A DNA stretch of 64,000 bases, from the NCBI RefSeq assembly GCF_964204645.1, contig NC_134034.1:7762962-7826961 (forward strand), in the 5' to 3' direction. A program made the translations under genes and the position numbers. Shown here piece after piece: positions 55,138 through 60,405 of this stretch. Position 1 is the first letter of the stretch. Every line of letters starts with the position of its first letter. The notes beneath the pieces were generated by a model. The model made no database searches and was not told the origin of the DNA. It saw nothing but the letters and a program-made list of their open reading frames with translations. This DNA is from Tubulanus polymorphus. Lineage: Eukaryota; Animalia; Nemertea.

Positions 55138-56525
55138 TGTTACGATTCGGTTTCCCCGCCTAAACATAACTCTGACCAGTACAGTCGGTCGAATTTCTCA
55201 AGAACCACAGCCGGAAGTCATCACTTTCGTTACGTCGGCCATTCGTAATCGAATCGACTCCGACCGTAAATTCGAGAGAAACTAAAAATAGGCGATCGGT
55301 TTCTTCGACTATAAAATTCAAGTGCAGTCTGAATTTTATTCCGGTTTCCATAAGCTCTACCGAATCCCACTGAATCTCGCGACAGTCATAGGCAAATAAG
55401 GCAATCGCATTACTAGAATATCTTCACCAAGAACCTTAGTGTCTGATGTACCACGGTGGTTACACAGGATCGTAGAGCAACGTAGATACACTGTGGAGAC
55501 TGCCAGGACTGGGTGAAAGAATATCATGCTCGAATATATATACTCCGAAAAATCGAACGCATAATCAAAAGAAGTAACAATTCATAGTTAAAAATGACAT
55601 GTATGAATATTTATTGATTTATTCAGGTCGAGAGTCGTGGCGAAATGAACAGGCTATTAGGATTTGACTAGGCCTCGGTCCTCCGAGCGATCCTGGGTCG
55701 AGAGGCGGCAAGGGCGATTATCCGATTTCGAGAGAAATCCGCGTTGTCAAGACAACGCAGATTACCCGGGTCATGATTCGAGAGAATTCGCTCGAAGCTC
55801 ATCGATGAAAGTCTTCGAGCGAGAAAAGGTAGAGACTAATAATCGAGGCGAGTCCACTCGAAGTCGAATAAACGTAATTCATACGGGATAAAAGGCTATG
55901 ATGTTCTTCCATTGCAGTGATCCTTGGTCGGATTCTCCTTTGATTTCGGGTTCAGACGAAGTATTCGAGCGGGGCCGGAGCCCTGTCCGAGGGACGTGGT
56001 TTGAAATGACTTATCGCATCATTCCGGGGTCAATACAGACCTGAATAAGGCAATTAGACTGTGCGTCTGGCGATTTTTAAGAGATCCATTATTCAGCGAG
56101 CGATTACAAGCTCTCCCAACGTGTCTCAAACACGGAATGTCAGGAATGCGGTTCTGACCGCTCTTAAATAGGCCGCCTTCTACGCTGATTGGCTAATAGC
56201 CAAATTACTGCGCGACAAAAAATGCCGGCGCACGCGGCTTTGGGTAGGCGTACATGACTGGAATTTTCGATGAATCAATCCTCGTTTGGATATTTGCTAT
56301 TGAAAGAGCGGAAACCCTTCACGGAAAAGACTTGGCAATATCCCAGGTAAAAAGAACTTTTTCGTAAAACGGCCGTCTACGATGAGGTGATACGGCACTT
56401 CCGGATTTCAGCGATTTCGAATAGTGCGGCTCTGAATTGGCGAGTTTTCCTCAAAAGACGGATATAATGCTATCGCGGACTGGTCATCAGGTCTGAAGGT
56501 TGGTTCCATGGTCAATCTCGCCACA
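55138..56525 (-). mobile_element. Putative ~1.4-kb solo LTR (Gypsy-like)
   Basis: TGT...ACA ends, higher GC, minus-strand TATA-like (~56165) and AATAAA (~55610); no TSD found. Confidence 0.4.
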
Positions 56526-56856
56526 CAAGTGGTTAATGGGTGTTTCAAGTGCTTACAACGATGCTTATTGCGTCATTCTTCGCGAGTAGCTGCTTTTCTA
56601 GGCAGATACTGGATAAATATTTTTTCAAAAATTTCCTTCAAAAAAAATGAATGCAGGAACGTTTACCTATGGTCAGGAGCTTATTAATCTATGTTCTGCG
56701 GTGACCAAGACATGGCAAGATGGCCGCTATGACGTCATGAAACTGTAATGTCACACATGCATTCGACCAGTTAACACGTGTTTCACTCGAGCTCCAGTAG
56801 AATACTACAATACAATACTACTACAACTCTGCCATGTCTCAAAAACCAGCACAAAA

Positions 56857-57485
56857 ATGTCATCAACTGACATGCAGAAAGAGGTTCAAACGCTAAAAGA
56901 ATCTAACCAGCAATTGACCAAAAAAGTCGAAGATATGGAAAAAACGATATCCGCTCTTCTCGCGCGCATGACTACCTTAGAAAACAGGGAACTAAACGCA
57001 AATCAAGTTATGTCTGAAGACAATGATAAAAATCATTCAAATTCCGAACGCCGACAAGATCAACGCAAAATAACCGGTTTAGTTATTGCTGATAGCAATA
57101 GGAAATACATATCACCCGCAGGACTCAGCTTCGGAAATCGTAAGTCAATCATTTATCCGTGTCCATTATTATCAGATGTCAAAGAAACAATTACTAAACG
57201 AAACTCTGATAATCCGGTGTCTCCTGATACCGTTTTGCTGCATGTGGGTTCAAACGACTGGGATTCTTAACAGGAAAAACAGATTATCACCGATGTTAAA
57301 AAATCTATAGAAGCTGTGCGAGAGTTATGGCCCGATACGAAAGTTAAAGTCTCACAAATCCTGCCACTTCAAGACACTTCAATCGAGGATTTAGACAAAC
57401 TAAACAACAAAATCGAAAAAACTGTCAATGAAAAAGACGCGTATTTCGTTCGCCATCGTATCTCCATCGAAGATCTCCACGACCT
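56857..57485 (+). pseudogene. LINE ORF1 (coiled coil + SGNH esterase-like), truncated
   Basis: Heptad N-terminus; VIADSN (block I), LHVGSND (block III), VSQILP; one in-frame stop at 57268; AAGATGGC motif upstream. Confidence 0.7.
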
Positions 57486-59233
57486 AACCGTCAGAGTGTT
57501 AGGATCATTTCGCGCAAGTGAGTCAATTGTTGCGTTCAGAAGTCTTCCTTCAACGTCCAAGCCGATATCATCGAATCACGGAGGTACATGTGAAATAACA
57601 ATTTTCGAGTCCGGATATCTGTTTTTTTTGTACAATTCACTAGATCTATCATTTTACCTATGCATGTTTCTGCATTTCCATATAGATCCAACATGATAGA
57701 CAATGGTCGACGGATTTCTTTCACGGCACGATTTTATTGTATCGACAGCTTCTGGGATAGTGTACGTCTGGAGCTTTCGGACTACACACGGTTTAACGAA
57801 GACCTCAGGATCAAAATACCTAAGGTTAGAGTCTCCAATTACTATGACCTCGCCTTTTTTCATTGATGCCGTCGTGGCTATCAGGTGTACGTAACCTTCG
57901 CATATAGTTATTTGACCCCCTCTCAGGTTTTGGTGATTCAGAGGGTTCTGGTGAGTCAGTGGGGGAGAGAGATGAGCGGTTGCGGACTGGTCGCTCCTGC
58001 GTTTTCATCGGCTGGCTCTCTCTCTTGCACAGAAACGCTGCTCAGGGTTTTCACATCTCTTAATAGGCAGTCGTTCTCAGACTGAGTATCTCTGACTGCG
58101 TTAACGGTTTTTTGTACATTCTGTATTTTGCTGTCGGTTCTATCAGAGATTTTGCGAATAGCGCTAACATTTTGTTCGATTGAGCCTAGTTTATCACATA
58201 ACTCAAAAACGTTATCCGTGCGTTTTTGTACACAATCTATCTTCTGTGTCACTGCTTTCAGGTCCTCTTTTTGCGCACAACGGTCAACCTGTTGTGTCAG
58301 TTTAACTATAGATGATTGAATGTTCTTAAGTATCGCTTCAAGTTCATCACTACCGACGAATTGGGGGGGGGGGGGGGGTCTGGCAGTGAATCGAAACTTT
58401 GCTTGATTTTGGTGCCTCAGGCTGAACACGTTCGTCACTGTTGCAGCCACACGGCGATTGTGTAGAGACAGCAACTTTTTCTTTCGCTATAGTCTCGGTT
58501 TCTAGCGGAGGTTTTATACACGGTGGGCAGAGATAGAGTTCATTGACATTTGCTTTCGCTTTGTTCAGATCGCACCGATTGAGTTGACTGCACTCGTAGT
58601 GCGTCCAGCTATCACAGAGAGAACAGGCAATCATTTCGCTGGTATCTTTTTCGTTGCAGCCAGTACACGATGATTTGCCCGATGGCAGTTGGCTGAGAGA
58701 GCTGGTGCTTGTTAAACGTTTGCTGTGAATTGTACCCAACATTTTGGGGAAAACATCCGCAAGCCATAGCAGATACGAGCTGCCGTGTATATGGAGCTTA
58801 GCTGATTTCTTATTGGAACCTTTCGTACAGAGTAGCATGGACTGACCTGAGTACAGTGCCATTATCGTCTGAATACGAGCCGGTGAATTGCAGTCCATAG
58901 CATCCTCGGTCAATAGGATCATCGTACAATTGTTGAAGGTGTTTATTGTAAGCTAATATTTTGTCTTTTTCGATCTCGATGACGATTGAATTCGTTTTTT
59001 CGTTTATCTTCGGTTGTGCTGTGTTTAACGGTTGATTTTCTTTTCAGTATAGCGGCACGTAACTTTGTGTAGGCACTGTTCAGTTTTTGAAACTGTTGAG
59101 TGGAATTGTCATTACCATTTTTATCAGGGTGCTGTTGTTTTGCCAGCAAAATGAATCTAGATCGAAGTTCATCGAGCCCCGAGGGCAGCACTTTCAACAA
59201 TGCATGCAATTCCTTCGTACTGGGCGCCGCCAT
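57486..59233 (-). pseudogene. LINE-type ORF1: DnaJ domain + TBP-like domain + PHD finger + coiled coil + SGNH esterase-like, frameshifted
   Basis: LAKQQHPDKN...FQKLNSAYTKL; VHATLY...KLHIHG..YLLW; C4HC3 CTGC..CSLCDSWTHYEC..CPPC; heptads; VIGDSN, YHVGS, VISHVPP. Confidence 0.75.
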
Positions 59234-59534
59234 CTTGGATTTTCTTTGTTTGGCCGTCGGAATGATTTTTCGGTATTTCGACGGGTTTTAAACGGTAGTG
59301 TTTCAATCACTTACTGATTTGTGTCACTTATTATTGCTTTCGGTAATTCCTGAAATAATTTGTACTTTCACACGCCCATTCTGGACAGATTTCGTTGATT
59401 TTCAGTGTTTTTATCGGAGCTTTTAAATCTACCACCACCTGCAAGCAGCGCCACTTGTGACATGATTACTAGAAACTATATAATTTTACAGCATAAACCC
59501 ATCAGATTTCATTCAAAATTCCTTTAATTCTATC

Positions 59535-60405
59535 TTAAGCAATTTTGGCTGCTGTCCTTTCAACTCGATTGATTGTGTTTTGATTATCAGAATTTGTTGA
59601 GTGCTCTACATCTGCTATATGCATCTCTAGTGGACACAGCTTTGACAGAGGTCTGTTAGTTATGCCACTAGATGTTTTGATTATAAAAGATCTAATGTAA
59701 TTATCATGGCTAGTTATAACGTGAATTATTATCCCCATGCGCCATTTGTTACGTGGAGATTCATCACAAATTAGTACCACAGAACCCGTTTTGATCAATT
59801 TTTCATTTTTCCCGTGAGAAAAATGACTTTCTCTCAGACTGACCAGATACTCCTTACTCCATCTTGACCAAAATGGTTCTTTAATCTTACAAAGAAATCT
59901 ATATCGTTTTGTTAAGTTTGATTCCGATGCATCAAACTCGGGATCATCGAAATCGTAGTCAAGGTTTGGTATAGACGAGATTCGTCGCCCACATAACAAA
60001 TAAGAGGGAGTAAGAGTTACATCGTCCAGATCTGATGAGACGTATAATAACGGACGGTTATTTAGAACACATTCTACCTCAGTAACGACTATACTTAATT
60101 CTTCATATGATAATAATGCTTTTCCCATGACTTTTTTGAGAGCGGTTTTTGTTAGTCCGATTAATCGTTCCCAAAACCCTCCGTGCCAAGGAGCTCGCTT
60201 TGTAATAAATTTCCATTCGATTCTTTTGCTTGTAAGATAATTGGATAAGAATTTTGCAACAGCAACAAAATTCGAAGCGTTATCTGAAATAATCTTCCTT
60301 GGCACGGAGCGCCGGGCCACAAACTTACGAAAGGCATAAAGAAAATCTTCCGCAGAATTTGATTTTACAAGTTTTCAAATGAACTGCTCTCGTAACTGAG
60401 CATGT
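59535..60405 (-). mobile_element. BEL/Pao integrase fragment (different family from the 30.8-kb element)
   Basis: IISDNASNF, APWHGGFWERL, LNNRPL, W.RWSKEYL, RPLSKLCPLE. Confidence 0.9.

Follow-up and report, generated by a model that had tools for sequence, protein, structure and literature searches.

The window analysed here is a stretch of 64,000 nucleotides from the genome of the nemertean Tubulanus polymorphus (contig NC_134034.1, positions 7,762,962 to 7,826,961 of the forward strand). On its minus strand, from 59233 down to 57483, lies a copy of the first open reading frame (ORF1) of a long interspersed nuclear element (LINE). This copy combines a J-domain, an unnamed domain of ~100 amino acids (hereafter the middle domain), a C4HC3 PHD finger, a coiled coil and an SGNH esterase. 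It is a pseudogene, a dead fragment without the second reading frame (ORF2), and its ORF1 is interrupted by six frame breaks. The parts of the copy, in window positions, are the following:

59234-59461, minus strand: presumed 5' untranslated region (UTR) of the LINE copy; single-copy in the genome, with an unrelated repeat upstream that ends at 59462
58943-59233, minus strand, frame -1: ORF1 piece 1, with the start Met, the J-domain (QQHPDKNG), helix III FQKLNSAYTKLRAAI and a basic linker; aligns with the J-domains of the paralogs
58825-59007, minus strand, frame -2: ORF1 piece 2, the N-terminal two thirds of the middle domain, NSIVIEIEK...DRGCYGLQFTGSY...SVHATLY, placed by tblastn
58712-58823, minus strand, frame -3: ORF1 piece 3a, the C-terminal third of the middle domain (KLHIHGSSYLLWLADVFPKML)
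58518-58667, minus strand, frame -3: C4HC3 PHD finger, residues 86-135 of the ORF at 58350-58922, placed by Pfam
58076-58345, minus strand, frame -1: coiled-coil region, placed by tblastn with paralog residues 341-430; Pfam matches to coiled-coil families only
57483-57878, minus strand: SGNH/GDSL esterase, 41% identical to residues 506-641 of an intact paralog, with two internal frameshifts

Reading frames and domains of the window copy

A preliminary description of this DNA had proposed a minus-strand reading across frameshifts, and this reading is borne out by tblastn: residues 5-641 of an intact paralogous ORF1 of 689 aa align to window positions 59275-57483 in frames -1, -2, -3, -1 and -3. 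The first four breaks are located near 59039/59007, near 58824, in a poly-C tract (58360-58375) and between 58076 and 57878. The fifth and sixth, both in the esterase, result from the loss of 14 bp at 57679 and from an indel of 2 bp in a homopolymer at 57622, as seen by comparison with a 94% identical sister copy (L002). Both esterase indels vary among sequencing runs. The contig of one run carries 14 additional bases at 57679, which restore the region of esterase block III, and most raw reads of another run have two bases fewer in the A-run at 57622. This run-to-run variation points to allelic variation or to a homopolymer error of the assembly.

The J-domain is contained in the ORF at 58943-59233 (96 aa, MAAPSTKEL...QQHPDKNGNDNSTQQFQKLNSAYTKLRAAI), which scores 34.5 bits with the Pfam DnaJ family (PF00226, cut-off 27.8) and in which the HPD motif and the helix III FQKLNSAYTKL are present, as described before. 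The middle-domain profile matches positions 58819-59010 with an E-value of 1.6e-9. The following ORF (58350-58922, 190 aa) contains KLHIHGSSYLLWLADVFP and the C4HC3 finger, which had also been called correctly; it reaches 25.5 bits with Pfam PF00628 (cut-off 24) and has the ligand pattern C-x2-C-x11-C-x2-C-x4-H-x2-C-x22-C-x2-C. The coiled coil agrees with the earlier call as well. Its frame is reached via the frameshift at the C14-15 homopolymer (~58360-58375), and the ORF at 57956-58474 (172 aa), rich in heptads, matches only coiled-coil families in Pfam; the call in the window is made from these matches and from the position.

In the esterase, the GDSN motif is retained and the identity to the paralog is 41%, and an ORF of 69 aa (VIVIGDSNLRYF) is found at 57654-57863. 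Block III has been lost with the 14-bp deletion, and block V is missing together with the last ~48 residues, which are cut off at 57483. In the 94% sister copy, block III reads GSYD. The intact paralog esterases show GDSN, GTND and D..H, and score 35.5 bits with Lipase_GDSL_2 (cut-off 32.9).

The minus-strand interval 59461-57483 is best read as an old, frameshifted and 3'-cut copy of a LINE, probably of the CR1/L2 kind, with an apurinic/apyrimidinic endonuclease (APE). By tblastn, the window contains no reverse transcriptase (RT) of the J-type family.

The J-type family in the T. polymorphus genome

The J/PHD part of the window copy has no near-identical DNA copy elsewhere in the genome. At the protein level, 12 further J-domain loci (at least 13 with the window) and 14 middle-domain loci were identified. 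These paralogous loci share 38-51% amino acid identity with the window copy and fall into at least six subfamilies with a mutual identity below 55%. The HPD motif is retained in each of the 12 other J copies, and the DnaJ scores of the paralogs range from 29.6 to 34.7 bits. Intact ORF1s, in which a single open frame spans the J-domain, the middle domain and the PHD finger, are 712, 689, 625 and 538 aa long. In the two longest, DnaJ, PHD and Lipase_GDSL_2 are all scored by Pfam.

ORFs with Exo_endo_phos and RVT_1 domains are located within a few hundred bases downstream of the 712-, 689- and 625-aa ORF1s, and an ORF2 with APE and RT directly follows ORF1 at three loci (L038, L039 and L042). One copy (L054) is 5'-truncated and runs, at 98.2% identity, from position 4136 of L038 to the 3' end; another (L056) is internally deleted and ~95% identical. 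L038 and L056 have a common 3' end, ...AATAAAGATATA(TTGAA)n, with differing flanks, and both carry a (TGAAT)3-4 tail. Because of the 5'-truncated copies and the independent insertions ending in a (TGAAT)n tail, it can be stated that the family has transposed.

The J-type LINE with the intact 712-aa ORF1 is present twice, at L038 and L040 (G000 C2:12745000-12754570 and C2:14024000-14033596). These were considered as separate insertions, a possibility that was rejected: they form one 9.6-kb inverted segmental duplication of 99.66% identity, flanks included, ~1.28 Mb apart. An in-frame TGA in L006 and L007 was likewise considered as a readthrough signal and rejected; its position differs between the copies, which indicates decay. 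Directly after the (TGAAT)n tail of L038 (7445-8300), there is an abundant repeat with more than 30 copies, 91-98% identical and with the same starting base, which also follows another J-type LINE in L039 (2925-3586). Either a nested insertion by chance or a non-autonomous partner could account for it.

Homologs in other assemblies

An exhaustive search with a profile of the J-domain, middle domain and PHD finger covered 1.84 billion cluster representatives. It gave 3256 matches at E<=1e-3, including many ordinary J or PHD proteins; at the stricter limits of E<=1e-10 and E<=1e-30 there were 99 and nine. With narrow hidden Markov models (HMMs), the J-domain and the middle domain were found together in 92 of the 157 fetched proteins, and several proteins in which these models seemed to miss the J-domain do score with Pfam DnaJ. 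The outside homologs come from ENA, NCBI, JGI, Logan and TARA samples. The top matches are 766-1146 aa long, with DnaJ scores of up to 81 bits over the full length, usually a PHD finger, and Lipase_GDSL_2. DnaJ is present in all of the top ten that were checked (45-70 bits) and the esterase in most of them, and ten further ones are alike. Across the outside homologs, DnaJ scores span 32.8-81.4 bits, many of them over all 63 profile positions.

Whole ORF2s (1179-1408 aa) follow ORF1 in NCBI assembly GCA_029979845.1, in a TARA Oceans metagenome scaffold and in an ENA assembly. In a second NCBI/ENA pair, the ORF2 after ORF1 extends as far as the contig end and has confirmed APE and RT domains, and on a second contig of the ENA assembly it is in pieces. 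A Logan run has an ORF of 1058 aa downstream of ORF1. RT, APE or both are on record after ORF1 at L044, L058 and L059 and on the contigs of P0003 and P0007; in all, a family ORF1 stands immediately before such an ORF2 in five other assemblies or metagenomes.

The suggestion in the preliminary description that the J-domain belongs to a LINE lineage is therefore well founded: the domain recurs at the other genomic loci and in the fetched proteins, continuous ORF1s are followed by an ORF2 with APE and RT both here and in outside assemblies, and DnaJ, PHD and SGNH co-occur in the two longest paralogs and in most of the top outside matches. The J-first layout is inherited within a LINE family that diversified long ago and has few copies in this genome, and many elements elsewhere share it.

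Variants with a NADAR domain were also observed. In P0008 this domain replaces the esterase, and P0048 has both. At L059 191-3604 (TARA) and L058 172-3612 (GCA_029979845.1), the NADAR variant is followed by an intact ORF2 of ~1180-1197 aa with APE and RT. Another protein from the profile search, P0040 (679 aa), contains six tandem matches to the family J-domain at a spacing of ~110-120 aa and may represent several element 5' ends in tandem, translated as a single frame. A word-index protein search with the 712-aa ORF1 gave no match, owing to the limit of the word index, and the family was then found by the exhaustive profile search. Sequence and fold searches of a protein atlas gave no usable information on family or taxon.

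Conservation and predicted fold of the J-domain

The consensus of 92 J-domain sequences, M......Y..LGL...A....IK.AYR.LAK..HPDKN....AT..FQ.LN.AY..L, is the canonical J pattern. In the aligned set, the HPD residues are conserved in 90/91 (H), 87/91 (P) and 91/91 (D) sequences, and the residue after them is K or R in all 91. The three basic positions of helix II are K or R in 58-71 of ~91 sequences. A start Met stands just upstream of the J-domain in 82 of 86 cases. The HPD conservation that had been put forward as a point to check is found in all genomic copies and in 103 of the 109 fetched proteins with a J match. At the sequence level, the family J-domain thus retains the defining residues of Hsp70 co-chaperones.

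Residues 1-283 of the 689-aa paralog were modelled by AlphaFold2 from a 49-row alignment, with a mean predicted local distance difference test (pLDDT) of 83.9. The model has three separate folded domains with disordered linkers between them. In the modelled J-domain, the helices 12-18, 28-42 and 52-79 have a pLDDT above 90. Its fold matches Tim14 (Z 8.0, root mean square deviation (rmsd) 1.9 Å, 63 residues aligned), xRbj (Z 7.6, rmsd 1.0 Å) and several DNAJ proteins, as well as the J-domain of a polyomavirus T antigen (Z 6.6). In Foldseek, the J-domains of CbpA and DNAJB9 were matched, and the modelled PHD finger resembles that of Pygo (template modelling score by target 0.79, rmsd 1.5 Å). The closest PDB sequences to the J-domain, DNAJC5 and DNAJB12, reach only E~1e-3, so that no host parent gene can be named.

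The middle domain

The middle domain of ~100 aa is strongly conserved and tightly linked to the J-domain. Its pattern is YG.P.DRG.HG.QF ... T.Y ... VQG.SYLLW..EHLP, in which the VQGxSYLLW..EHLP motif is invariant or nearly so throughout the family. It has no match in Pfam, and a profile search against the PDB sequences gave nothing below an E-value of 0.08. Modelled alone (pLDDT 89.5), it is predicted to fold as beta-beta-alpha-beta-beta-beta-alpha.

The likeness to TBP and the RNase HIII N-terminal domain that had been suggested for this part is weakly supported, in that the best structural match is an RNase HIII N-terminal domain (3vn5_A, Z 7.6-7.7, rmsd 2.1 Å, 69 residues aligned), with further matches to 4py5_A (Z 6.6) and 2d0a_A (Z 5.6-5.8), three species in all. 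These matches are tied within ~1 Z with other alpha+beta sandwiches, namely CYTH, KA1, Med18/20 and BamC domains. There is no sequence similarity to RNase HIII, and the middle domain has an additional N-terminal beta hairpin. In Foldseek, it has no match below an E-value of 0.012. The Pfam scan detected neither an RRM nor a zinc knuckle in any of the 22 family ORF1s scanned; Arg-rich linkers are present.

Comparison with known LINE ORF1s and J-proteins

Type IV ORF1s, the ones with an esterase, were reportedly described by Kapitonov and Jurka in 2003 for LINEs of the CR1/L2 group, with or without a PHD finger. The J-type elements resemble them in their PHD finger, coiled coil and C-terminal SGNH esterase, in their separate ORF2 with APE and RT, and in a short tandem-repeat tail in place of poly-A. 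They differ in the N-terminal J-domain and in the unnamed domain of ~100 aa. Neither is among the ORF1 modules listed for the Jockey/CR1/L2 superfamily, which are only CCHC, RRM, C-terminal domain (CTD), coiled coil, esterase, PHD and zf/lz (PMC4120745). In that list, the esterase ORF1 is found in vertebrate subgroups only, whereas the host here is an invertebrate. An esterase ORF1 is also that of ZfL2-1 (PMC3905857). In a 2026 survey of CR1-group elements, it is the sole ORF1 type mentioned, and poly-A is reported as unique to Zenon (PMC13343379). No description of a J-domain or DnaJ in a LINE ORF1 was found in the full-text literature, with subscription journals and Repbase Reports outside the coverage. 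The J-headed architecture, which the preliminary description did not know as a standard one, is apparently undescribed.

Between another assembly and this genome, the RTs of the J-type elements are 43% identical, whereas the RT of a non-J esterase LINE of this genome reaches 27-35%. This hints at one old J-type lineage, a comparison with a single outgroup being no test.

Outside the transposons, polyomaviruses and some phages encode their own J-domain. The large and small T antigens of polyomaviruses offer a parallel, as a selfish element there carries its own N-terminal HPD J-domain for the host Hsc70. They differ in that the element is a virus and the partners of the J-domain are helicase/origin-binding or PP2A-binding parts instead of an RNA-coating protein, and outside the J-domain family they have no sequence kinship with the LINE ORF1. 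A second parallel is formed by the class C J-proteins, in which one domain serves very different local tasks. Auxilin/GAK, for instance, is a J-domain cochaperone on clathrin coats. Like the LINE protein, auxilin/GAK and Cwc23/Cwf23 join a lone J-domain to a targeting or nucleic-acid-binding domain, by which Hsp70 acts locally on a multimeric assembly; unlike them, the LINE protein is of transposon origin and bears its J-domain N-terminally. Cwc23/Cwf23 has RNA-binding activity and aids spliceosome disassembly (bioRxiv 10.1101/2024.06.27.600868).

Possible role of the J-domain in retrotransposition

Taken as a whole, these observations are probably best explained by an APE-type LINE with a J-headed ORF1 that recruits Hsp70. 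The ORF1 protein (ORF1p) is composed, in this order, of the J-domain, a disordered basic linker, the alpha+beta middle domain of ~100 aa, the PHD finger, the coiled coil, an Arg-rich linker and the SGNH esterase. Its chains would multimerise through the coiled coil, and the LINE RNA would be held by the middle domain and the basic linkers. The N-terminal J-domain of each chain could dock the ATP-bound Hsc70/Hsp70 of the host and trigger ATP hydrolysis. Hsp70 might then be clamped on adjacent clients, which may be ORF1p itself, the nascent ORF2 protein or proteins coating the RNA. The outcome would be the assembly of the LINE ribonucleoprotein (RNP), or its loosening ahead of target-primed reverse transcription.

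Recruitment of Hsp70 by the ORF1 J-domain is likely, judging from the conserved HPD motif and the basic face of helix II. A complex of J residues 1-88 with an intronless Hsp70 of the host (L046, residues 1-545) and ATP was also predicted. Of 78 solved complexes, 51 reached the mark in this procedure, as did 2 of 108 mismatched pairs. The pair obtained a score of 0.58, against 0.00 for the best of three controls, with a contact agreement between runs of at least 84% and a partner pLDDT of at least 74. The weak support from this prediction adds little to a pairing that is already likely from the sequence.

Several points weigh against this explanation. The score of 0.58 lies in a band where passes are more often wrong unless the pairing was likely beforehand; at 0.60 or below are found 5 of the 78 solved complexes and all four passing mismatches (of 180). 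The pass may also reflect memory, as solved J-Hsp70 complexes exist. Six of the 109 J-domains have lost the HPD motif. The TBP/RNase HIII-N-like assignment of the middle domain is the best available guess, from a middling fold match with Z below 8, and nucleic-acid binding by this domain is a guess too. Each ORF2 examined in this genome is broken into two or three pieces, so that the family may not be active here at present. The family was not seen in any run recorded as RNA among those listed, and X7, which is taken for an RNA run only by guess, gave nothing on the window, neither of which is evidence of silence. The assignment to CR1/L2 is indirect, made from the esterase-type ORF1 and the non-poly-A microsatellite tail.

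Four other explanations were considered. Hsp70 may be recruited for a different purpose, such as membrane trafficking with the lipid-binding esterase, nuclear import, protection of ORF1p against degradation or a coupling of transposition to heat stress. The client is not fixed by anything in the sequence, and the variety of tasks served by class C J-proteins leaves room for such uses; a targeting to membranes has indeed been proposed for the esterase of CR1/L2 ORF1p (PMC3905857). No evidence speaks against this proposal, which is a variant of Hsp70 recruitment for RNP assembly or opening and differs from it solely in the client. We nevertheless rate it as rather improbable. RNP remodelling is a natural first guess because an RNA-binding J-protein, Cwc23/Cwf23, supports the disassembly of the spliceosome.

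Somewhat less probable still is that the J fold has been kept without any action on Hsp70, as a helical docking or oligomerisation module similar to Tim16. The top fold match does come from a Tim14-Tim16 entry, the complex prediction supports Hsp70 weakly, and the protein has neither a G/F region nor a canonical client-binding domain. J-like proteins without Hsp70 stimulation, however, lack the HPD motif. In this family, HPD and the next K/R hardly vary among sequences with no more than 20-50% identity, and helix II has retained its basic face; the matched chain 2guz_B moreover aligns as a J-domain, beside many bona fide J-domains.

It is very improbable that the proteins represent a host gene family domesticated from ORF1. 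Several ORF1s in this genome do stand intact beside broken ORF2s, but an ORF2 with APE and RT follows ORF1 at every checked locus and is intact in other assemblies, one copy is 5'-truncated, microsatellite tails are present, and many divergent paralogs are scattered over the chromosomes. A one-off chimera, in which a single decaying LINE ORF1 took up a host DnaJ exon or had one assembled next to it, would suit the unique J/PHD part of the window copy and a locus that is a patchwork of transposable element fragments, but is refuted by the existence of the paralogs and outside homologs, with J, middle domain and PHD in one frame in the divergent subfamilies, the two first domains joined in proteins of several other assemblies, and a conserved start Met immediately before the J-domain.

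With Hsp70 recruitment for RNP assembly or opening as the preferred explanation, a wider proposal can be made, which we hold with less than even confidence. The element might be the first transposon-encoded Hsp70 co-chaperone, in an ancient and widespread LINE clade of marine invertebrates in which the RRM and zinc knuckle would have been replaced by the J-domain and a new nucleic-acid-binding domain, possibly one for RNA:DNA hybrids, with the host Hsp70, in place of ORF1p alone, assembling or opening the RNP for target-primed reverse transcription. If true, retrotransposons would join polyomaviruses and some phages in the strategy of bringing an own J-domain. The roles of LINE ORF1s beyond human L1 are poorly understood, and the known modules point to no defined host partner. 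A conserved J-domain names Hsp70 as such a partner, and HPD mutants would give a genetic handle on the assembly or opening of the retrotransposon particle. The middle domain, for its part, is an unnamed protein family with a confidently predicted fold.

Ends of the copy and neighbouring repeats

The LINE copy is surrounded by fragments of other elements:

56757-57482, plus strand: LINE of a different family, 5' end and ORF1 with coiled coil and SGNH esterase, without a J-domain; also cut at 57483 and placed tail to tail with the J-type copy
59535-60320, minus strand: C-terminal fragment of a BEL/Pao-like integrase, upstream of the LINE copy; 72 bits with Pfam DUF5641 and a 75% DNA match elsewhere in the genome

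At the 5' side, homology to other loci ends at 59462, and the interval 59234-59461, without a second copy in the genome, is likely the 5' UTR of the LINE copy. The integrase fragment, which this 5' end abuts, includes a 158-bp piece (59462-59619) with 97% identity to a contig C12 locus.

At the 3' side, the copy is cut at 57483, ~48 residues before the end of ORF1, where it abuts the inverted fragment of the unrelated LINE. The possibility that 57483 is a shared LINE 3' end, raised by a 300-bp sister copy whose match stops there, was rejected. The 94% sister of the window subfamily (L002/L043) extends in frame to the ORF1 stop and then to an APE ORF, and a 94% copy of the plus-strand LINE (L057) extends beyond the cut point into its own RT. 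As the sister copies of both LINEs run beyond 57483, both elements have been cut after insertion. Both fragments have a complete 5' end, and the esterase of each is broken off at almost the same relative point. The junction could have arisen by a deletion between two convergent insertions. In raw Illumina reads of an independent run, the bin containing 57483 has an ordinary depth and no listed break, and the junction is therefore probably real. In an independent Illumina run, the depth at 56500-56630 exceeds that of the adjacent bins tens of times over, which indicates a short, highly repeated element immediately upstream of the plus-strand LINE.

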